Shown: piece after piece, positions 46,190 to 59,736 of the stretch
Position numbering within the stretch: position 1 is the stretch's first letter
How the letters are laid out: every line of letters begins with the position of its first letter
DNA from: Blastocladiella emersonii ATCC 22665
Taxonomy: Eukaryota; Fungi; Blastocladiomycota
Reading direction: 5' to 3'
NCBI GenBank assembly: GCA_025594325.1
Contig: JANHCV010000001.1
Location: 2,728,001 to 2,792,000, forward strand
DNA: 64,000 nt
The notes under the pieces: generated by a model
Told to the model about the DNA's origin: nothing
What the model saw: only the letters and a program-made list of their open reading frames with translations
Databases searched by the model: none
Made by a program: the position numbers and the translations under genes

Positions 46190-46685
46190 ATGCACGCGCC
46201 ACGCGTAGCCGACGACGAGCCGGAGAGGGCCGAGGCGAGACGCGTTGTGCACCTCTCGCACGGACTCATGCCGCAAGCAGGCGCGAATCTCGCAACGGGC
46301 AGCGACCGAGCTGGCGGCAAGCCAAGGTACGCGATCTCATAGGCGAGCGCTAAATCGACGAGCCGTCAGCCGAGCTGCACGGGGCCGATCCATGGGACGA
46401 GCGGGAGCAGGCAGTGACGAGGGAAGCGAAGATGCGTGCTCTCGAGATGAGCTGCACGGTCATTTTACTCGGTGAGCGCCGACAACGACAAAGTTAAGGC
46501 CTGGCCGGTGAGCTCTCAAGTGAAGTAGCTGATCCGTGTCCATGTCGCCACGCGAGCTTCTCGGCTCAGCGGGAGGGGCCGGGCGAGCGCGAGGACGACG
46601 GGCCGAAAGGCGAGTACACAAGGCCGATCCATGAAGTCAGAAGGAACTCGAGCATGAGCATGCAGCGACGGTAGCGAGCACGATC
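46190..46685. repeat. Diverged outer extension of the inverted repeat (pairs with about 58446-58960)
   Basis: Conserved blocks: 46367-46391 vs 58811-58835 (25/25); about 46433-46458 vs 58699-58724 (1 mismatch); about 46190-46217 vs 58932-58959 (1 mismatch). The blocks are separated by indel-rich sequence. Confidence 0.85.
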
Positions 46686-49600
46686 GTGAGTGATGCACGG
46701 CTGTGGCGGCGCCAGCGACGACGATGACGGGGAGAGGACGGGACCCGTTCAGAAAATCACGTCGGCGAAGGGCCCGAGGAACACGTTGTTCGGCGCGCGC
46801 CAAGACTCGGGGAGGGTGTGCGAGATCCGCGAGAGGGACCGACAAGGGCGGAGCGCAGGACGATGACGGAGGTGGTGCCAGCTCCATGTGTCTCCTCCGA
46901 GCAGCGGGCGCGCGAGCGAGCCCGGGCGGGTCCATGTGGGAGAGGCGGCGATCTCCAACAAACCATCGAGCGAGGCCGAACGAGGCGGGTGTGGAAAAAA
47001 AGGCGGAACGAGTGCGGAGCGGTTTGCGGCGCGCCACACGTTTTCTGGGCCGGTCGGCTCGCGGACCTCGCGGCGCGGCGCGGCGGCATGGAACACGTTG
47101 AGGCGCGCCCGTGCGGCGGCGCCATGGTTCGCTGCCGCCGCCGCCGCACTGTGGCGCAATCCTCGCCGCGTGGCGGAAAGCACGCACGCACGCACGCGAA
47201 CGAGGGAAACGTGTTTCTGAAGGGCCAAACGAGCGGGCCGCGCGCCCTCGCAGCCCCGCGTCCACGCCAGCACGCCGGCCCGCACACGGCTTCACGCCAG
47301 AGCCCTCCGGGACGGGACCGCACGCGCCGCGTGTGTGCGGCAGTGCGCATGCTATACGCCACGAGGGGAGCACGCGTGGTCCGCTCGCCCTCGAGCTCGA
47401 TCCTCCGCAGCAAAAGTATAAGTAGAGCGGCCGCCCCCCGCCCATCCCGGCTGCCGAGTCTCCTCGTCCGGATCTACCTCGCTACGCTTCACCCACTAGA
47501 GATCAGCACGGCCATCACCCACTCGCCCGCGCTCTCGCTCGCCCCCGCCCTCCCGTAAGAACCCCACCCGCATCGCGCGCATCACCAACCATGGGCGTCT
47601 ACGACGGTTTCTCCAGCTCGGAGAAGAAGAACCTCACCATCTACATTGGTGGCATCATGTTCTACAAGTTCGCGCTCGAGACGCTGACGGGCTGCATGTC
47701 CAACATCGTGCTCAACCGCTACAAGGTCGCGCCCGCCGCCACCTGGGGCGCCGTCGTGTCGGTCAACTACGCGTGCCAGTCGATTGGCTCGCTGCTCGTG
47801 TCGCCGCTCATCAAGCGCTGGCCCACTTCGCGCGTGCTCGCCACGTCCATCTTCCTGTTCGGCCTCATCGTCGCCATCATCCCGATCCTCGAGGCCGTCA
47901 ACGGCGGCGGCTCGACGGGCCTCGGCGACGAGAAGAACTACAAGAACGGCAGCTGGGACCCCTTCCTCGTCGCCATCCTGTTCCCCATTGTCGGTATCTT
48001 CCACGGCATCATCGAGCTGATCCGCCGCGTCATCCCGCGCGACATTGTCGGCTCGGACCCGTCCAAGCTCAAGCGCATGGACTCGACGGTGCACATCTTC
48101 TACGAGACGGCCGGCACGCTCGGCGCGCTGCTCTCCAAGTACTGGATCGCCTACTTCAACTACGCCTACTCGCTGGCCCTGATCCCGATCGCCTTCACGG
48201 GCGCTGCCATGATCTGGTCGCGCATCAAGGACGCGACGAGCGAGGCGTACGAGGGCCCGTCCAAGACCAAGCGCGTCTCGGGCAACATTGTCTCCGAGTT
48301 CTTCGCCATCGTCAAGGCCTTCTTCTACTCGGTCTGGGTCGGCCTCAAGCTCGTGTGCACCAACCGGTCGCTCGTGTGGCTCATCCCCGCCTACACGCTG
48401 CCCCTCGTCCTGCACCGGTACCTCGAGAACGTGCTGTTCGCGCACTACGCCAATTTCGCGCTGTCGACGGGCTCGTACCAGCAGCTCCTCGTCTCGGGCT
48501 CCAACTTTGGCGAGCTGTGCGGCGCCGCCTTTGTCCTCTTCTTCGCCGACGCCGTCAAGACGCCCATCCCGTGGCTGCGCCTCGACGCCATCATGCTGCT
48601 CGTCGTTTGGATCTTCCCGCTCGCGTCGCCGTTCGAGAACATTGAGGGCTGGGTCTGGTTCCTCGCCGCCATCATGATCCCCGTCTCCATGGGCTGGGCC
48701 GCCGGCGACGTGTCGCTCGTCGCGTACGTGCAGTCGCGCCTCGCCAAGATCGAGGACTCGGAGGCGACCGTGTCGCCGCTCGGCTCGGTCATGTCGTTCC
48801 TCTACGTGCTGTACATTGTCATCTTCGCCGTCGTCAACACGGCCATTGGCAAGGTGCAGGACTCGTTCGTCGCCGACCTGCTCAAGAAGTACGGCTCGGC
48901 CAAGAAGTTCCCCAAGCTCGCCGGCCTCAAGCCGACGCAGGACGCCATGTTCTACACGGCCGGCCTCGTCATGACGTGCTGCGGTGTCGTCGTGCTCCTC
49001 TCGACCTTCATCCCCAAGGGCTCGCTCGCCTTCAACCCCGACAACCTCGACGACGCCGAGGACGACCGTGCCCTCGCCCAGCAGCTCGAGCACGACAAGG
49101 CCTCGGAGACGGCTAAGGACCGCAAGGAGATGATCGAGGCCATGGTCGCGTAAAAGCGGCGCCCGCCTCCTCGCCTCGTTCGCTCGCTCACTTTTTCTCT
49201 CCTCCCTCGGTGTGACCCCCCCCCCTCCCTCATCCTGTCGTGCTTCGTGTGCTTGCTCGCCGCTGCGTTGGCCATCTCCTCGCTCAACGCAGCCTGCGGC
49301 GGCGGCGCGTGCGCGGCATCCACTCTCCTCTCCTCCCTGCTCAACTTTTTTGGTGTGATCGGCGGCAGTGCGCCTGGATCGCAAAGTGATATATAGACCG
49401 TTTTTGTGCTACTACTCTACACTTGTCTTCCGTGTGCTTGTGCCTCAACATCTGCTCTCGCGACGCGAGCATTGAAGTTGTTGCTCGCGAGCGCTCAGCG
49501 CGCCGCACCGCGTGTTCCGTTGAGCGAGCAAGAATATCGCCAAAGAAGCTCGGGATACGCCATGTACGATAGACGCAATGCGTGCGGTGCAAAGGGGATC

Positions 49601-50294
49601 AGCCGACAAGGGCGGTGGCGGCCACCGAGGGCGTGGGCCGCGATGCCCGCGCGGTCACGCCGACATGAGCGACGCGCGTCAAGACAGACGCGAGCGCTGA
49701 TCCCTGCAGCTCGCAGCACGTGACACGACTTAGACGTCTAAATTCACGATGCATCAGAATATTTTTTTCTGAGCATCGGATCGTCATCAGGGACCCTCAG
49801 GGACCACGTACATGCAAAAGTCTCCGAGTCGAAGTGTCGGGGTGTCGAGAAGTCGTCCGGCCGTGCAAAGTTGAAAAAAACTTTTGGTTTTGGTCGTTCG
49901 GACGATCTCGCGCCAATCCTGCACGTAAGACTTGGCTTCTTGAATCACACCATGTCGCCGATCCGGCCGAAACTTTGCGTATGAGCATCATATGTGTCTG
50001 AAGCTATTTTAGCGTCGAGAAAGTAATTTTGCAAATTTATGTGAGCCCGCTGCAGCGATGGGTCAACTTAGCTCACGTATTCGAGCGGCCATCGTGCGCG
50101 TCGGCGGCCATCACGCGCGGCCATCACGCGTGTGTTCGCTCGCTCGCGTTCTTGCTTCCCCGTTACCTTGCGCATCTCATCGCTCATGAACAGCGAGACA
50201 CTGGAAGCCGAATGATGCAGGAGAACGCTCGGCCACACCCCAAGTGTAACAACTTCACGCCCGAACGGCGCGCTCACCCGCGTGATGGATCGGC
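46686..50294 (+). repeat. Left arm of a large inverted repeat (3,609 bp)
   Basis: Reverse complement of 54837-58445. Paired coordinates sum to 105131 at both ends and at the ORF ends, so there is no net indel. Mirrored ORF translations are identical in all frames of the track, and spot checks, including a C10 homopolymer, match. Confidence 0.95.
47591..49153 (+). CDS. MFS-fold transporter, copy 1 (520 aa, intronless)
   Basis: About 12 hydrophobic segments. ELIRRVIPRDIVGSDPSKLKRMDSTVHIFYETAG resembles the DHA3-type loop motif. Strong host codon bias. Substrate unknown. Confidence 0.85.
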   Translation: MGVYDGFSSSEKKNLTIYIGGIMFYKFALETLTGCMSNIVLNRYKVAPAATWGAVVSVNYACQSIGSLLVSPLIKRWPTSRVLATSIFLFGLIVAIIPILEAVNGGGSTGLGDEKNYKNGSWDPFLVAILFPIVGIFHGIIELIRRVIPRDIVGSDPSKLKRMDSTVHIFYETAGTLGALLSKYWIAYFNYAYSLALIPIAFTGAAMIWSRIKDATSEAYEGPSKTKRVSGNIVSEFFAIVKAFFYSVWVGLKLVCTNRSLVWLIPAYTLPLVLHRYLENVLFAHYANFALSTGSYQQLLVSGSNFGELCGAAFVLFFADAVKTPIPWLRLDAIMLLVVWIFPLASPFENIEGWVWFLAAIMIPVSMGWAAGDVSLVAYVQSRLAKIEDSEATVSPLGSVMSFLYVLYIVIFAVVNTAIGKVQDSFVADLLKKYGSAKKFPKLAGLKPTQDAMFYTAGLVMTCCGVVVLLSTFIPKGSLAFNPDNLDDAEDDRALAQQLEHDKASETAKDRKEMIEAMVA

Positions 50295-50930
50295 ACGGTT
50301 GAACGCGTCGTGGGCGGCGTGTGCCGCATTCTCTCTCCTCTCGTTCCCGAACACGCTCACGCACACGCCATGAAGCGCGACCTGCGCCTCCCAAACAGTT
50401 GCTGCATTATGGCGCAACAGGTTGCACGGACTCGACCCGGAACGCGACGCGGCCCGAACGCGACGCGGCGCTTCCCTCTCTGCGGTCTCGACCGACGCCA
50501 CGCCGTCGTTGTCGGCTCCGTCGGCGCCGGCTTGGCCTCGGCCTCGGCCGTCTTCGTCGGCGCCGTGTCGGCCGTGTCCATGTCCCAACGGTGCTGCGGC
50601 ATGGAAGATGGTTTCCGGCATTGAGCATCGCATGAACGATACGCAATAATCGCCTTGCCGCACCGATCCTGCTGCGACCGTGCCCGCGCCCCTCGGTCCC
50701 GGTTTGGTTCGGTCGTGCTGCCGTTGCTGTCACTCGACCATTTCTCTCGGACGCGCTCTACGTCTGACGCGACCAGCAGCGCCGAGGCCGTCATTCCCCG
50801 CTCTTCTCTCGCGGGCAGAGGCGGTTGACGCACACCTGATCCGCCGGAGCTTGATTCGCGCCGTCTGAACCGTTCGTACTCGCGAGTCCGATCCGATCGA
50901 TCACGGCCCCAGTATGAGAGCACCCCCTCA

Positions 50931-50975
50931 CTTCACTTCACTTCACTTCACTTCACTTCACTTCACTTCACTTCA
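50931..50975. repeat. Microsatellite (CTTCA)9
   Basis: Nine perfect pentamer copies. Confidence 0.95.
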
Positions 50976-51203
50976 CGCCGCGGTCCTGCACTGCGATTGC
51001 ACGACGACAACGCCGAGCAGCGGGACTGAGACGAGAGCCGTCAGCTCCGAGATCGTCCTCGCTCAGAGCTCAGAGCTCAGAATTTGCAATCGTAGCTCAG
51101 AAAACCCTGCATCCGTATATGTACGACTCTGGCTGCATGAACAAAAACCATCCATCGGGCGGGCGTAGAGGTGGTGAAGAGCAGGCAGCACGCGCGTGTC
51201 CCG

Positions 51204-51655
51204 CTCCATTCACCCGCGCCCTGAGCCCCCAAGGGGACCGAACCAGAAGCGCGGGGGAGAAGACACGCGTCGACGGGCAGCCTCGCGTCCGTCACGATCG
51301 CACTTTCGCTCTCCATTCACCCGCGTCCCGAACCCCCATGGGGGTCTCGCCGGGAAAAACGCGGGGGAGAGGTACTCGGCGGCCTCGCACACGGCTCGGG
51401 GGGTCTCCATTCACCCGCGTCTCGAGCCCCCATGGGGGCCGAACCGAGAACGCGGGGGAGAGCCCGTTCGCGGCCTCGCTCGCTCGCGCGCGTCTTCGTC
51501 TCCGTTCACCCACGTCCCGAGCCCCCATGGGGACCGATCCGGAGACGTGGGGGAGAGTACTCGGCGGCGGCGGCGGCAGCCTCGTGTGCGCTTTCGTCCC
51601 CATATACCCGCGCCCCGAACCCCCATGGGGGTCTAGCCGGGAGCGCGGGGGAGAG
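51204..51655. repeat. Array of five ~57-63-bp imperfect palindromic (hairpin) repeats, period about 94-107 bp
   Basis: Units at about 51204-51260, 51309-51371, 51405-51462, 51500-51557 and 51597-51655. Consensus CTCC-ATTCA-CCCGCGY-CYCG-A-RCCCCC-AT-GGGG(GY)-n5-CGRG-A-RCGCGGG-GGAGAG. Confidence 0.9.
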
Positions 51656-51771
51656 TACTCGGCGGCGGTATCGTGCGGGGGGCGCCCGCCCGTCGGCTCG
51701 TGGCCGTGGCCGTGGCCGCGGTCGCGCTGCTGCTCCTGCTGCCACTCCACTTGAACTGCGACGACGTGTCG

Positions 51772-51843
51772 CCGCGTACGACTTGCGACCGCGACCCCGC
51801 GTACGACTTGCGACCGCGTAACCGCGTACGACTTGCGACCGCG
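51772..51843. repeat. 3 x 22-bp direct repeat CCGCGTACGACTTGCGACCGCG with 3-bp linkers (25-bp period)
   Basis: Exact copies at 51772, 51797 and 51822; linkers ACC and TAA. Confidence 0.9.
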
Positions 51844-51899
51844 AGCGGCTGCTGCGGCACGGCCGAGTTGAACTTGACCGTCCGTTGGTCGAGGCCGGG

Positions 51900-52530
51900 C
51901 GCCGAGCACCGTGTTCTTGAGGATCAGGATGAGGACAATCGTGACGCGGATGGCGATGCCGGTCTTGCGCGACAGCGACAGCGACAGCGACCCGTTGCAG
52001 CGGCCGATGATCGAGTTGAACGAGCGGCCACCTTGGCCTGGCCTTGCCGTCGAGCTTGATCACGGCGAGCGACATGGTCTTGGTGGCCGACTGCTTGGTG
52101 GTGGTGGTGAACGTCGCGCCGTACGGTAGTCGTTGCGCGATGACAATCTACGCCGCAGGCAGGGGATCTTGGTGGTTAGCGTGCGGAGCGAGCGCGAGCG
52201 GATCAAGAAGCGAGCTGTGACCGTACCTGGCAGCAGCGATCGATGCACCACACCACGCCACGCCACGCCACGCCACGCCAGGCCAGCGAGAACCGGGACT
52301 TGACGATCTTGGCAACGGCGGCAGCGACGCGTCGGCCGTGTGCTTGATGATCGTGACGGCCGATGAGCGACGGCCGAACGGGACAGGAGCGGGCGGAACT
52401 CGGGGGCGCGCGCTCGTCAGGCCGCGACAGCTGCAGCGGGACCTCGAGTCGCCGCCGTGCCGTGGCTGCCGATGATCTCGAGGACGGGACGAGCGCCGAG
52501 GCAGAAGGTGGTCGATCGCGTTGATGTCAT
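51900..52530 (-). pseudogene. Possible decayed spliced gene fragment
   Basis: Intron-like AG|GTACGG...GCTAAC...CGTAG at about 52148-52226. It is followed by coding-like IVIAQRLPYGATFTTTTKQSATKTMSLAVIKLDGK and, after a frame change, RKTGIAIRVTIVLILILKN. No intact ORF. Confidence 0.3.
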
Positions 52531-53442
52531 GGTGAGAAGTCGAGACCGTCCAGCCCGGGAGGTGAGGTAGTAGTGAAGTGCGAGGGAGGAGGGCGAGTGA
52601 GGATCAGTTGAGCGAGGAGCCCGAGCGCATTTATGGGCTCCGCAGGCGTGCAGCCGCCGGCACGCGCGCGAAACCAGCCACGAGCGGGGGCAGCGGCAGC
52701 GGCAGCAGCGGCGCGACACGGTGCACGGTGGCAGTCCGAGCGAGCGAATGAGCGAACAAACGAACGAGAAACTCGGCGCGAAACCGCCGAGATACTGAAC
52801 AGGCGCGATATTGTCTCGCACCACGTCGCACGCGCGCACCATCGGTCCGTCGTAGCTGACCAAGGCGGCGCGCTCGCCATCGCACCAAGACAAGGAAATC
52901 CTCGATCGGTGCCGCCCGTGCGAGACGTTGCCAAGAGCCTGTTCCGTCGGAAGCGCGGCGCGGCGCGGCGCGGAGGCCGTGCACCAGCGTAGAGGTGCGC
53001 CGCTCTAGCTCACGATGAGTCAAACTGCGTCCCACTTTGGAACCGGAACTGGAACTCGAGCGGGCACGGGGGGCACGGGGGCACGGGGGCACGGGGGGAG
53101 ACGCGACGCGCGAGACGTGGCGCGACGCGTGTCAGCCATCAGCTGACTTTCACGTGGGAGGTGCGAGACATGATCACGATCGCGCGTTTGGGACAAGTAA
53201 ATATCAACGAGACTTGCCGCACGACAACCGACACTAGGTGAAACACGTGCTGAATGAACATGAAATGAGCTCGGCCTCGCGCAGGTCAACATTCAGACGA
53301 GATGTTCAAGGTTGTACAGGCAGATTCGACGCAACACGTCGAACGTAGTGTATTATGAAATAGGGGAGGGGAACGCACACGCCGGCACATCACACGCAAT
53401 ATGAGATAGGAAAGTGAAGAAAGAGGACGAGAGGGGAAAAGC

Positions 53443-54300
53443 TTAGATGCCGCCAAAGATCTTGGTGAGGATGGCCGCAAGGCGAAGGCCGCCCTTGAGG
53501 ACCTGGGCGTTGACAATGTCCTTGTTGGCCTTGTAGTACGCGCCGTTGGTCTGGTCGCCGGCCTGGAGGCCGTCGCGGTAGACGGCCGAGCACACGAGCG
53601 CCTCGCTGTTCTTGGCCCACGACTCGGCGCACGCGGTGACCTTGGCCTCGTTGGTGGGGTCAACCGATGCGGCGCACTCGGCCATGGTGTCAGCGGGCGC
53701 CGGCTTGGTGAGGAGGGCATCGACCCACTGCTCGGCCGAGCCGCCGAAATCGTCGGACTGGACCTGGCGGATGAGCGTCGAGTCCCAGAGGCTGTGCAGG
53801 TTGACGGTCTTCTTGGCGAACTTGACCTTAATGTTGTTGGAGCCGCGCTCGTAGCCCGACGCGTGGAGCGGCTGCGCAATGTCGCCGACATAGTGCACGA
53901 GGTAGGCGAGGGCCTGACCGGCCTCCTTGCCCGACTTGTTCGCGCTGAGGATCTTGGCCGAGGCGGCGATCGCGGTGACAACGCAGCCGGTGTCCTCGCA
54001 GCTGGTCGGCAGGGCGGCGGTGCGGCCGCAGTCACCGGGGGAGTCCGGGTACTGGATGTAGTGCTGCGGTGCGGTCTTAGGGCTCTTGTGGCGGTCGGGC
54101 CACGTCGACGCGTCCTCAATGGACTTGACGTCGGGGCTCGACTTGATCAGGGCGTCGACGCCGGCCTTGGCGCGCGGCGTCAGGTTGGCGTAGGCGATCG
54201 ACGCGACGGCCTCATGGCCCTCAGAGCCCCAAGCGTTGGCCGAGTTGGCGAGCGCGAGGAGAGCGAAGACGGTGATGAGGAGAGTCGAAGGGTTGGTCAT
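53443..54300 (-). CDS. Secreted S1/P1 nuclease (single-strand-specific nuclease/3'-nucleotidase), 285 aa, intronless
   Basis: Signal peptide, then mature N-terminus WGSEGHEAVA. Zinc-ligand motifs WPD, HYI, LVHYVGDIAQPLH and NLHSLWD all present. Confidence 0.95.
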   Translation of the reverse strand: MTNPSTLLITVFALLALANSANAWGSEGHEAVASIAYANLTPRAKAGVDALIKSSPDVKSIEDASTWPDRHKSPKTAPQHYIQYPDSPGDCGRTAALPTSCEDTGCVVTAIAASAKILSANKSGKEAGQALAYLVHYVGDIAQPLHASGYERGSNNIKVKFAKKTVNLHSLWDSTLIRQVQSDDFGGSAEQWVDALLTKPAPADTMAECAASVDPTNEAKVTACAESWAKNSEALVCSAVYRDGLQAGDQTNGAYYKANKDIVNAQVLKGGLRLAAILTKIFGGI

Positions 54301-54366
54301 GGCCGACGTCTACGGAGGATCTATGGTGATGAGGGACACAGTTGAGGCGCGGGGGACTCGATCCTC

Positions 54367-54372
54367 TTTATA
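54367..54372 (-). promoter_or_regulatory. TATA-like box (TATAAA) upstream of the S1/P1 nuclease
   Basis: TATAAAG on the minus strand about 70 bp upstream of the ATG at 54300, in otherwise GC-rich DNA. Confidence 0.4.
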
Positions 54373-54836
54373 CGGGCGGGTTCAGGGCCCGCCGCCGCTG
54401 CGGCGTGTTCCCGGGTCCTCAGCTTGCTTGCTCGAACGAAGCCGCGTCGGAAAGAACCGGCTGCAGTCCGATCGAGTCCGTGTTGCTCGCGTGCAAGATT
54501 TACGTCTGAAACACGGCGTAGCGTTTGCCGAGCCGAAGGCACGGACACGCGCACGACCTGGTGCCGCAACCTCCACTTTCAACTGGTTTGCATGCGGATG
54601 TGTTTCACTTTTGCTCCGCTCGTCACGAATGTCAAGCAGTCACGCGTTTTCTCGACGCGTGCCGCCTCGCGGACGAGTCCAAGCGACACAAAGACCGAGA
54701 AGTCACCCAGACCGCGAAGCTGCATCAAACGCATCCACGGGGCGATGATTCGCTCATCGCACTGAGTTGACCACGAGGCACGAGGCACGACGCACGACGC
54801 ACGAGTCATGAGCTGCGTACGATACGTTTCCACCAC

Positions 54837-57800
54837 GCCGATCCATCACGCGGGTGAGCGCGCCGTTCGGGCGTGAAGTTGTTACACTTGGGGTGTGGCC
54901 GAGCGTTCTCCTGCATCATTCGGCTTCCAGTGTCTCGCTGTTCATGAGCGATGAGATGCGCAAGGTAACGGGGAAGCAAGAACGCGAGCGAGCGAACACA
55001 CGCGTGATGGCCGCGCGTGATGGCCGCCGACGCGCACGATGGCCGCTCGAATACGTGAGCTAAGTTGACCCATCGCTGCAGCGGGCTCACATAAATTTGC
55101 AAAATTACTTTCTCGACGCTAAAATAGCTTCAGACACATATGATGCTCATACGCAAAGTTTCGGCCGGATCGGCGACATGGTGTGATTCAAGAAGCCAAG
55201 TCTTACGTGCAGGATTGGCGCGAGATCGTCCGAACGACCAAAACCAAAAGTTTTTTTCAACTTTGCACGGCCGGACGACTTCTCGACACCCCGACACTTC
55301 GACTCGGAGACTTTTGCATGTACGTGGTCCCTGAGGGTCCCTGATGACGATCCGATGCTCAGAAAAAAATATTCTGATGCATCGTGAATTTAGACGTCTA
55401 AGTCGTGTCACGTGCTGCGAGCTGCAGGGATCAGCGCTCGCGTCTGTCTTGACGCGCGTCGCTCATGTCGGCGTGACCGCGCGGGCATCGCGGCCCACGC
55501 CCTCGGTGGCCGCCACCGCCCTTGTCGGCTGATCCCCTTTGCACCGCACGCATTGCGTCTATCGTACATGGCGTATCCCGAGCTTCTTTGGCGATATTCT
55601 TGCTCGCTCAACGGAACACGCGGTGCGGCGCGCTGAGCGCTCGCGAGCAACAACTTCAATGCTCGCGTCGCGAGAGCAGATGTTGAGGCACAAGCACACG
55701 GAAGACAAGTGTAGAGTAGTAGCACAAAAACGGTCTATATATCACTTTGCGATCCAGGCGCACTGCCGCCGATCACACCAAAAAAGTTGAGCAGGGAGGA
55801 GAGGAGAGTGGATGCCGCGCACGCGCCGCCGCCGCAGGCTGCGTTGAGCGAGGAGATGGCCAACGCAGCGGCGAGCAAGCACACGAAGCACGACAGGATG
55901 AGGGAGGGGGGGGGGTCACACCGAGGGAGGAGAGAAAAAGTGAGCGAGCGAACGAGGCGAGGAGGCGGGCGCCGCTTTTACGCGACCATGGCCTCGATCA
56001 TCTCCTTGCGGTCCTTAGCCGTCTCCGAGGCCTTGTCGTGCTCGAGCTGCTGGGCGAGGGCACGGTCGTCCTCGGCGTCGTCGAGGTTGTCGGGGTTGAA
56101 GGCGAGCGAGCCCTTGGGGATGAAGGTCGAGAGGAGCACGACGACACCGCAGCACGTCATGACGAGGCCGGCCGTGTAGAACATGGCGTCCTGCGTCGGC
56201 TTGAGGCCGGCGAGCTTGGGGAACTTCTTGGCCGAGCCGTACTTCTTGAGCAGGTCGGCGACGAACGAGTCCTGCACCTTGCCAATGGCCGTGTTGACGA
56301 CGGCGAAGATGACAATGTACAGCACGTAGAGGAACGACATGACCGAGCCGAGCGGCGACACGGTCGCCTCCGAGTCCTCGATCTTGGCGAGGCGCGACTG
56401 CACGTACGCGACGAGCGACACGTCGCCGGCGGCCCAGCCCATGGAGACGGGGATCATGATGGCGGCGAGGAACCAGACCCAGCCCTCAATGTTCTCGAAC
56501 GGCGACGCGAGCGGGAAGATCCAAACGACGAGCAGCATGATGGCGTCGAGGCGCAGCCACGGGATGGGCGTCTTGACGGCGTCGGCGAAGAAGAGGACAA
56601 AGGCGGCGCCGCACAGCTCGCCAAAGTTGGAGCCCGAGACGAGGAGCTGCTGGTACGAGCCCGTCGACAGCGCGAAATTGGCGTAGTGCGCGAACAGCAC
56701 GTTCTCGAGGTACCGGTGCAGGACGAGGGGCAGCGTGTAGGCGGGGATGAGCCACACGAGCGACCGGTTGGTGCACACGAGCTTGAGGCCGACCCAGACC
56801 GAGTAGAAGAAGGCCTTGACGATGGCGAAGAACTCGGAGACAATGTTGCCCGAGACGCGCTTGGTCTTGGACGGGCCCTCGTACGCCTCGCTCGTCGCGT
56901 CCTTGATGCGCGACCAGATCATGGCAGCGCCCGTGAAGGCGATCGGGATCAGGGCCAGCGAGTAGGCGTAGTTGAAGTAGGCGATCCAGTACTTGGAGAG
57001 CAGCGCGCCGAGCGTGCCGGCCGTCTCGTAGAAGATGTGCACCGTCGAGTCCATGCGCTTGAGCTTGGACGGGTCCGAGCCGACAATGTCGCGCGGGATG
57101 ACGCGGCGGATCAGCTCGATGATGCCGTGGAAGATACCGACAATGGGGAACAGGATGGCGACGAGGAAGGGGTCCCAGCTGCCGTTCTTGTAGTTCTTCT
57201 CGTCGCCGAGGCCCGTCGAGCCGCCGCCGTTGACGGCCTCGAGGATCGGGATGATGGCGACGATGAGGCCGAACAGGAAGATGGACGTGGCGAGCACGCG
57301 CGAAGTGGGCCAGCGCTTGATGAGCGGCGACACGAGCAGCGAGCCAATCGACTGGCACGCGTAGTTGACCGACACGACGGCGCCCCAGGTGGCGGCGGGC
57401 GCGACCTTGTAGCGGTTGAGCACGATGTTGGACATGCAGCCCGTCAGCGTCTCGAGCGCGAACTTGTAGAACATGATGCCACCAATGTAGATGGTGAGGT
57501 TCTTCTTCTCCGAGCTGGAGAAACCGTCGTAGACGCCCATGGTTGGTGATGCGCGCGATGCGGGTGGGGTTCTTACGGGAGGGCGGGGGCGAGCGAGAGC
57601 GCGGGCGAGTGGGTGATGGCCGTGCTGATCTCTAGTGGGTGAAGCGTAGCGAGGTAGATCCGGACGAGGAGACTCGGCAGCCGGGATGGGCGGGGGGCGG
57701 CCGCTCTACTTATACTTTTGCTGCGGAGGATCGAGCTCGAGGGCGAGCGGACCACGCGTGCTCCCCTCGTGGCGTATAGCATGCGCACTGCCGCACACAC

Positions 57801-58445
57801 GCGGCGCGTGCGGTCCCGTCCCGGAGGGCTCTGGCGTGAAGCCGTGTGCGGGCCGGCGTGCTGGCGTGGACGCGGGGCTGCGAGGGCGCGCGGCCCGCTC
57901 GTTTGGCCCTTCAGAAACACGTTTCCCTCGTTCGCGTGCGTGCGTGCGTGCTTTCCGCCACGCGGCGAGGATTGCGCCACAGTGCGGCGGCGGCGGCAGC
58001 GAACCATGGCGCCGCCGCACGGGCGCGCCTCAACGTGTTCCATGCCGCCGCGCCGCGCCGCGAGGTCCGCGAGCCGACCGGCCCAGAAAACGTGTGGCGC
58101 GCCGCAAACCGCTCCGCACTCGTTCCGCCTTTTTTTCCACACCCGCCTCGTTCGGCCTCGCTCGATGGTTTGTTGGAGATCGCCGCCTCTCCCACATGGA
58201 CCCGCCCGGGCTCGCTCGCGCGCCCGCTGCTCGGAGGAGACACATGGAGCTGGCACCACCTCCGTCATCGTCCTGCGCTCCGCCCTTGTCGGTCCCTCTC
58301 GCGGATCTCGCACACCCTCCCCGAGTCTTGGCGCGCGCCGAACAACGTGTTCCTCGGGCCCTTCGCCGACGTGATTTTCTGAACGGGTCCCGTCCTCTCC
58401 CCGTCATCGTCGTCGCTGGCGCCGCCACAGCCGTGCATCACTCAC
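54837..58445 (-). repeat. Right arm of the large inverted repeat (3,609 bp)
   Basis: Reverse complement of 46686-50294. Identity stops after ...ATGGATCGGC (inner end) and ...GCATCACTCAC (outer end). Confidence 0.95.
55978..57540 (-). CDS. MFS-fold transporter, copy 2 (translation identical to copy 1)
   Basis: The ORF track gives the same 520-aa protein on the minus strand. Confidence 0.85.
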   Translation of the reverse strand: MGVYDGFSSSEKKNLTIYIGGIMFYKFALETLTGCMSNIVLNRYKVAPAATWGAVVSVNYACQSIGSLLVSPLIKRWPTSRVLATSIFLFGLIVAIIPILEAVNGGGSTGLGDEKNYKNGSWDPFLVAILFPIVGIFHGIIELIRRVIPRDIVGSDPSKLKRMDSTVHIFYETAGTLGALLSKYWIAYFNYAYSLALIPIAFTGAAMIWSRIKDATSEAYEGPSKTKRVSGNIVSEFFAIVKAFFYSVWVGLKLVCTNRSLVWLIPAYTLPLVLHRYLENVLFAHYANFALSTGSYQQLLVSGSNFGELCGAAFVLFFADAVKTPIPWLRLDAIMLLVVWIFPLASPFENIEGWVWFLAAIMIPVSMGWAAGDVSLVAYVQSRLAKIEDSEATVSPLGSVMSFLYVLYIVIFAVVNTAIGKVQDSFVADLLKKYGSAKKFPKLAGLKPTQDAMFYTAGLVMTCCGVVVLLSTFIPKGSLAFNPDNLDDAEDDRALAQQLEHDKASETAKDRKEMIEAMVA

Positions 58446-59736
58446 TTACGATCGCCGTACTCGCTGCTGCCGTCGCCCCGCCTCCTCGTCTTTGCCTGCT
58501 CTCGCTCGAGCTTCCGCCCGCCCCGTGGATCGGCCTTGCGCACCGCTTCTCGGCCTTACCTCGCGCTCGCTCGCCCCTCGCGTCGTCGAGCCAGCGGAAC
58601 CGAGGCGCCGCGCAACAACTTGGATCGGCGACTTTGCTTGAGAGGTCACCGGCTGCGCCTCCGCTTTGACGACGTCTGCGTTCACTGAGTGATGTGGACG
58701 TGCAGCTCATCTTGAGAGCACGCACCTGTGTCCCTCGTTGCGAGTCCCTGCTGCTGACGCTTCGGTTCTTCGTCGCTGCCTGCTCTCGCCCATGTTTCCG
58801 CCTGCCTCAAGGATCGGCCCCGTGCAGCTCGGCTGTCGGCCAGTCGTCTTCGCGCTCGTCCTGACGCGGGACGAGTCTGCCATGCGAGAGGTGAGTAGCT
58901 CGCATTGTCTCGGCCTTCACCAGTACCAGTCCGTCGTCGGCTACGCGCGGCGCGTGCATACCCCGCGCGAACACTCGGGGACTTCGCAGCGACGTCGACG
59001 AGGCAATGAGAGAGGTTCACGTTGTCGGCGTGGGCCGATCCTTACGAGCAACTCGACGCGCCGGATGCTGACGACTATGTCCTCCCTCCAGGTCCGCGCA
59101 TCGTCGTTGGAAACGGTCCAAGGTCGCTACTCGGTTCTCAAAGGGGCCGGCAACTTTCTCTCACCCGCTGTTCCGCCGTGAGTGAAGCGGATGGTTCCCA
59201 ACCTCTCGCTGTTCGTGCGTGCTGTGCTGCTGGCCCGCGAGCCTCGCTGCCCTTTCGCGTTGCCCTCTGCGCCAAACGCAAGAACTGTACATCGTAAGCC
59301 TTGTGCAGGCTAGCGATCATACGTAATGCACCTGTACTACTTGTGGCTTCCTCACAACTTACGCGCGGTAAACGAGGCAACGTCGCTCAAGTCGGCATCA
59401 CTGACCGCCTTTGTCGACAACATGAGCATGTCAAGTCCTTTTGTCAAGCGTCGGCTCCCTGGCTACCCTTGGGTGCCTTCGCAAACATCTCCAGCCGATG
59501 AGTCTGCGACGCGCAGGCGCGTGACAGCTCCGCGAGACAAAAGTGCGAGACGCGTTCGCCATCGCACGTGAGTGGCGCTCACAAGACGAGCGACGCGTCA
59601 CGTCAGCTGCGCCGCCTCGGCCCCGGTGTTGTGCCGCGCAGGGTTAAAACCGTCGTCGCAGCCCGCCGCGGCTCTCGCTCCCGCTCTCACCTGCCCCCTC
59701 CTTCCCATCATCTTGCACACATTCATCCATCGCACC

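Follow-up and report, generated by a model that had tools for sequence, protein, structure and literature searches.

A tandem array of five strand-asymmetric, covarying hairpins in Blastocladiella emersonii and its possible reading as a minus-strand structured RNA

Introduction

Several homologous hairpins of about 55 to 70 nt, arranged in one orientation within one presumed transcript and with stems that change in a pair-preserving manner, are characteristic of tandem miRNA clusters of animals, such as those of the mir-430 and mir-17~92 type, and of the milRNA hairpins of fungi. A tandem array of five hairpins in the fungus Blastocladiella emersonii shares these features but differs in that its matches to Rfam are below threshold, its apex is conserved while the mid-stem varies, and its very GC-rich stems carry a 5-nt bulge. 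To our knowledge, no miRNA-type tandem precursor cluster has been described in early-diverging fungi.

Two further systems are built of palindromic units. Bacterial REP elements are imperfect GC-rich palindromes clustered near gene ends, and the array resembles them and their BIME assemblies in having short GC-rich imperfect palindromes, clustered in non-coding DNA near a gene end, with a strand-specific fold. In contrast to REP/BIME, it is eukaryotic, keeps one orientation throughout, has homologous linkers and no associated transposase, and shows no dispersed copies in the 64-kb window (the whole stretch of DNA analysed here) or in two other B. emersonii loci. Satellites derived from MITEs or foldback elements likewise carry palindromic units in tandem in repeat-rich non-coding DNA. 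The array differs from these in lacking terminal repeats with target-site duplications, in having no second locus in the same 64 kb and two loci, and in stems that are maintained by two-sided changes instead of decaying.

Finally, in short hairpins maintained by replication template switching (PMC8794818), the two arms also change in ways that look compensatory, whereas the array keeps asymmetric bulges and uncorrected G·U pairs beside compensated pairs, features that tract-wise copying should remove. Here, we describe this locus, which is a real, strand-asymmetric, covarying hairpin array without known relatives, and weigh the processes that might have produced it.

Architecture of the hairpin array

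The hairpins lie at about 2,779,204-2,779,655 of contig JANHCV010000001.1 of B. emersonii ATCC 22665 (record coordinate = window coordinate + 2,728,000), JANHCV being the accession given in the B. emersonii genome paper (PMC9730499). Unit starts are spaced by 107, 94, 95, and 98 bp, and the positions of the units and of the surrounding features are collected in Table 1.

Table 1. Features of the hairpin array and its surroundings in window coordinates, with fold energies of the hairpins on either strand (kcal/mol)
Feature	Position	Strand	Description	Minus-strand fold	Plus-strand fold
Inverted repeat, left arm	46686..50303	.	Perfect, 3618 bp; holds MFS transporter gene 47591-49153 (+)		
AT-richer stretch	51080..51150	-	55-125 nt beyond the final hairpin in minus-strand direction; with UACAUAUA and a U5 run		
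Whole tandem array	51187..51680	-	Five ~95-bp units, each a hairpin plus a linker; from repeat finding, alignment, and covariance model		
Hairpin unit 1	51204..51259	-	56 nt; loop CUUG; U·G at two positions; U-A at pair 23-46	-30.0	-23.8
Hairpin unit 2	51311..51369	-	59 nt; small bulge with three extra U; A-U at pair 30-43	-30.6	-28.3
Hairpin unit 3	51405..51460	-	56 nt; U-A at pair 22-47, a two-sided change private to this unit	-33.0	-30.6
Hairpin unit 4	51500..51555	-	56 nt; bulge UGAAC; A-U at pair 13-52, a two-sided change private to this unit	-30.9	-26.8
Hairpin unit 5	51598..51653	-	56 nt; bulge UAUAU; outer stem with U·G	-34.3	-30.7
Coding-like exons, unannotated	51883..52370	-	Upstream of the array; gene-like codon usage		
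S1/P1 nuclease gene	53443..54300	-	In the same spacer as the array; 1.8 kb upstream of it on the minus strand		
Inverted repeat, right arm	54828..58445	.	Perfect, 3618 bp		

On the minus strand, every unit forms a hairpin of four helices, P1 to P4, on which RNAalifold and single-sequence folds agree. P1 is a 5-bp outer stem followed by a 5-nt 3' bulge (UGAAU), P2 comprises 7 bp followed by a 1-nt bulge, P3 comprises 4 bp followed by a 4-nt one-sided 5' loop (GNNN), and P4 is a 6-bp apical stem closed by the loop CAUG. Across the five units, the bulges and the one-sided loop do not differ in position, and four units share the same apical loop. Conservation is highest at the apex, where the six columns beside CAUG are invariant, and the variable columns are those of the mid-stem. 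The hairpin of unit 2 also contains a U5 run.

A preliminary description, made from the letters of the sequence, had presented the array as five units around an apex CCCCC-AT-GGGG(G), or CCCCC-AA-GGGG in unit 1, and its sequence statements were all borne out. Re-reading places the 5-nt bulge as ATTCA in units 1-3, GTTCA in unit 4, and ATATA in unit 5, the variants of the main, next, and apical stems match those listed there, and the RNAalifold check that it proposed returned the same structure. Beyond that description, an outer stem CTCC/GGAG of 4-5 bp closes every hairpin.

The linkers, which the same description had found to diverge more than the hairpins, indeed have a mean pairwise identity of 55% with many indels, compared to 82% with few gaps for the hairpins. 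They are about 35-50 nt long, fold no better than shuffled sequences (z +0.2 to +1.7), and are diverged copies of each other with GAGTACTCGGCGGC and CCTCG blocks in common. Since the linkers are homologous between units, whole ~95-bp units must have been duplicated in place. Tandem Repeats Finder had no row for the array among the rows listed.

Covariation and strand asymmetry

Pairing on the minus strand is nearly complete, with 109 of 110 pair cells standard (99.1%), 10 of these being G·U. The sole non-standard cell is a U·C at the outer-stem end of unit 1, and every other substitution in a paired column keeps its pair. Two-sided changes have occurred at five pairs (13-52, 19-49, 22-47, 23-46, and 30-43), three of them confined to one unit each (units 4, 3, and 1). 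Being private to one unit, these three represent separate terminal events that shared ancestry does not explain. By our own calculation, a second substitution in a unit would fall in the partner column and supply the complementary base with a probability of about 1/43 x 1/3.

The covariation comes from five paralogous copies at one locus of one genome, for which significance of the R-scape type is not claimable, and within this frame no column shuffle out of 500 matched the observed paired fraction or covariation score, while five two-sided changes were attained in 3 of 500. Sliding the 3' partners by 1-3 columns left pairing at only 31-63%. The fold z-scores of single units taken as RNA are modest (-1.5 to -4.0). 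Together, the pair-keeping substitutions, the retained bulges and invariant G·U, and the freely decaying linkers uphold the core proposal of the preliminary description, namely, that structure rather than sequence is being preserved.

The two strands are not equivalent in this respect. The 10 wobble cells, confined to four columns, all read G·U on the minus strand, with one such pair kept in every unit; on the plus strand, 99 of 110 cells pair, with 11 mismatches and zero G·U. The minus-strand fold is also the more stable one in every unit, by 2.3-6.2 kcal/mol. This wobble pattern fits the classical G-C / G-U / A-U path for a minus-strand RNA, and it is suggestive of the minus strand as the folded strand. 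The strand call is short of conclusive because it is based on four wobble columns, and by our own calculation, wobble on one strand in four columns would arise by chance about 1 in 8 times, counting either strand. A strand-biased C-to-T mutation spectrum could mimic the asymmetry.

Known families and other classes of repeat

Searching the whole window against Rfam 15 at the gathering threshold gave zero matches. Under permissive settings, the best match, mir-202, scored 18.1 bits (E = 0.57) where gathering calls for 51, and is noise; the best of these non-significant matches are miRNA precursors on the minus strand. With respect to a tRNA or a tRNA-derived SINE, ARAGORN found neither tRNA nor tmRNA in the window. 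A covariance model built from the five units matches them with 79-89 bits on the minus strand only and found no sixth copy in the 64-kb window or the two other B. emersonii loci.

Outside this genome, pattern scans with the whole hairpin gave zero matches in metagenome and viral contigs. A looser pattern of the 3' half hit 15 metagenome stretches, mostly a dispersed repeat in metagenome Ga0070730, which scores 16-22 bits under the covariance model of the array and has neither the outer stem nor the bulge. We do not regard it as a relative, since its architecture differs and the resemblance was judged to be imposed by the search pattern. This repeat is about 110 nt long, often lies at contig ends, and forms a GC-rich double hairpin with a core reminiscent of the 3' half of the hairpin in B. 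emersonii, and is probably a bacterial REP-like element or an insertion-sequence end. The long, spurious open reading frames across the array, once translated, matched no similar called proteins, the one match (P0013) being an unrelated repeat protein. Neither the metagenome and viral scans nor the translated-ORF searches found an orthologue or a further copy of the array.

Other identities were considered and rejected. A coding repeat is contradicted by unit spacings that are not multiples of three, by the absence of third-position GC periodicity, by the lack of a codon-usage signal in the hairpin units (51204-51653), and by the blank translated-ORF searches; one weak plus-strand codon-usage window starts at 51685, at the right edge of the array. 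A CRISPR-like array was rejected because the linkers are diverged copies of each other (55% identity), not unrelated unique spacers. G-quadruplex DNA, which had been among the options first proposed, was not sustained, as a canonical motif is present in unit 5 only (minus strand, with loops up to 7 nt) and none on the plus strand. By inspection, a pseudoknot between the 5-nt bulge and the 4-nt loop is compatible with units 1 and 3 only, and the kink-turn, H/ACA, C/D box, B-box, and hammerhead-core motifs lack the required boxes or G·A pairs.

A proposed structured RNA and its alternatives

Pair-preserving substitutions such as those described above call for one of two processes: selection that acts on a single strand in its folded form, or mutation of a templated kind. 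We tentatively favor the first, reading the array as a lineage-specific minus-strand structured RNA with five repeated recognition hairpins, at a probability of about 0.4, because the asymmetries and the invariant G·U persist in all units, contrary to template switching. The predicted minus-strand transcript would begin at the decayed gene immediately upstream, with the array most likely forming its trailer or 3' untranslated part; alternatively, the array might originate as a separate non-coding RNA. Every unit would present one rigid GC-rich hairpin between unstructured linkers, and the five hairpins would be putative recognition modules for a structure- and sequence-specific RNA-binding factor, together making a multivalent site. 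We infer the transcription of the array, its transcribed strand, and its binding role from the sequence, and among the options raised in the preliminary description, a protein-binding RNA array appears to fit best. Weighing against a structured RNA are the absence of an annotated gene across the array, the finding of only five paralogous copies in one genome, the modest fold z-scores of single units, and the U5 run within the hairpin of unit 2.

The main rival explanation, somewhat less likely, is that the array is a functionless palindromic minisatellite, whose arms are kept complementary by replication template switching in quasi-palindromes together with gene conversion between units, and which perhaps arose from a small foldback or MITE-like seed amplified by unequal crossing-over. 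The homologous linkers, with their record of whole ~95-bp units duplicated in place, agree with such an origin, as do the simple-repeat-rich surroundings with (TCACT)10, a 25-bp repeat of 2.9 copies, and hexamer runs. The states of the paired columns are also shared in a mosaic manner, with pair 19-49 grouping units 1 and 5 and pair 30-43 grouping units 2 and 5, as expected of gene conversion. Moreover, hairpin complementarity is documented to arise and be maintained in a single step through template switching (PMC8794818).

However, under template switching, tracts are copied from the opposite arm and asymmetries should disappear, yet all five units retain both bulges (5 nt and 1 nt), the one-sided loop of 4 nt, and an invariant G·T. 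In unit 1, the two-sided changes 19-49 and 23-46 flank an uncorrected U·G (pair 21-48) together with the 1-nt bulge. The placement of all wobble cells on one strand and the lack of an additional copy within the 64 kb plus two other loci likewise speak against a minisatellite. Mimicry of covariation by template switching is a recognized pitfall for RNA-discovery pipelines, and if template switching without selection had produced the array, it would be a clean natural example of mutational mimicry of RNA covariation.

It is improbable, to our judgment, that the array is instead a polycistronic small-RNA precursor, in which, in the manner of tandem miRNA clusters, each ~57-nt hairpin would be excised and cut by Dicer to a duplex of ~21-23 nt. 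The length of the hairpins and their total stem of about 22 paired positions are within the range of animal pre-miRNAs, the hairpins are homologous, in tandem, and in a single orientation, and the best Rfam matches, though non-significant, are miRNA precursors on the minus strand. Yet these matches are noise (18 bits versus 51, E = 0.57), and the stems are very GC-rich with large one-sided bulges. In pre-miRNAs, the arms are usually more conserved than the terminal loop, and the array has the reverse pattern, with the apical loop and apex kept and the mid-stem variable. Dicer proteins, which such processing would call for, are present in some Blastocladiomycota and have been lost in others, and B. 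emersonii is not named in the available part of the source (PMC12663654).

Weakest of all, and very improbable, is that the hairpins act in DNA, as single strands or cruciforms, and are recognized by a structure-specific DNA enzyme, for instance a replication nickase or a HUH-type transposase: the analogy to the clustered GC-rich imperfect palindromes of bacterial REP elements and the folding of the minus strand with DNA parameters as well (-13 to -18 kcal/mol; z -1.6 to -4.1) would suit REP/BIME-like sites, but the neighborhood has no transposase, Rep, or helicase gene, the 64-kb window and the two other loci have no dispersed copies, the bulges make cruciform extrusion from duplex DNA unlikely, and the wobbles add little under DNA parameters, with the DNA fold of unit 5 losing its wobble-dependent outer stem.

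The structured RNA that we favor would, if real, have consequences beyond this locus. Structured non-coding RNAs of early-diverging fungi are almost unexplored, and a compensatorily maintained multi-hairpin element would offer a new entry point to them. Such an element could be relevant to how a model fungus with zoospores stores or regulates RNA, or to the biogenesis of small RNAs outside Dikarya. More doubtfully still, the array and other tandem hairpin arrays of B. emersonii may form one undescribed, blastoclad-restricted class of strand-specific modular multi-hairpin transcripts that would serve as scaffolds for RNA-binding factors or as small-RNA precursors.

Genomic setting

The array is situated inside a 4524-bp spacer (50304-54827) separating the two arms of the inverted repeat, in a window with a G+C content of 60-73% throughout. 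The arms are 100% identical and carry identical genes for a 520-aa MFS transporter, both converging on the spacer, and the palindrome continues to about 46344-58858 in flanks of lower identity (77-80%). Called genes in the neighborhood encode MFS transporters, a nuclease, a peptidase, a KDEL receptor, and a SNARE, with no transposase, Rep, or helicase gene near the array, and the public annotation has zero genes called from window position 49153 to 53443. No second haplotype copy is on record, the protein searches with the MFS transporter and the nuclease having returned this locus only.

Two neighboring nuclease genes lie at about 1.929 Mb of this contig, and the nuclease gene of the spacer is a ~1.15-kb duplicate (window 53327-54460) of one of these, with an identity of 84% in DNA and 86% in protein. 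The duplication shares the gene and about 120-160 bp of flanks only, and the array is absent from this paralogous nuclease locus.

Upstream of the array on the minus strand, the coding-like exons (Table 1) score codon-usage log-odds of 19-37 per 30 codons, where the nuclease gene averages 28. A canonical 79-nt intron at 52226-52148 (GTACGG, CTAAC, TAG) joins two of them in phase, and an apparent frameshift lies near 52020-52040. Both the Pfam and the homologue searches with these exons were blank, and the stretch is either the remnant of an orphan gene or a real small gene with an assembly indel. As this gene seems frameshifted and is without relatives, it is possibly no longer transcribed. 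On the minus strand, which both share, about 230 nt separate the last coding-like stretch from the array downstream of it, so the placement of the array would be that of the 3' trailer of a minus-strand transcript, in agreement with the strand of the fold. On its other side, the AT-richer stretch could be the 3'-end region of such a transcript or a TATA-like element for a plus-strand one.

Simple repeats abound in the spacer. In minus-strand direction, the array is immediately preceded by a 25-bp tandem repeat (51772-51844; 2.9 copies) and followed by a perfect (TCACT)x9.8 microsatellite at 50928-50976. In the otherwise non-coding spacer, the window 50484-50603 (+) also has gene-like codon usage, with log-odds of 21 per 30 codons, and its translation is a hydrophobic, transmembrane-like peptide.
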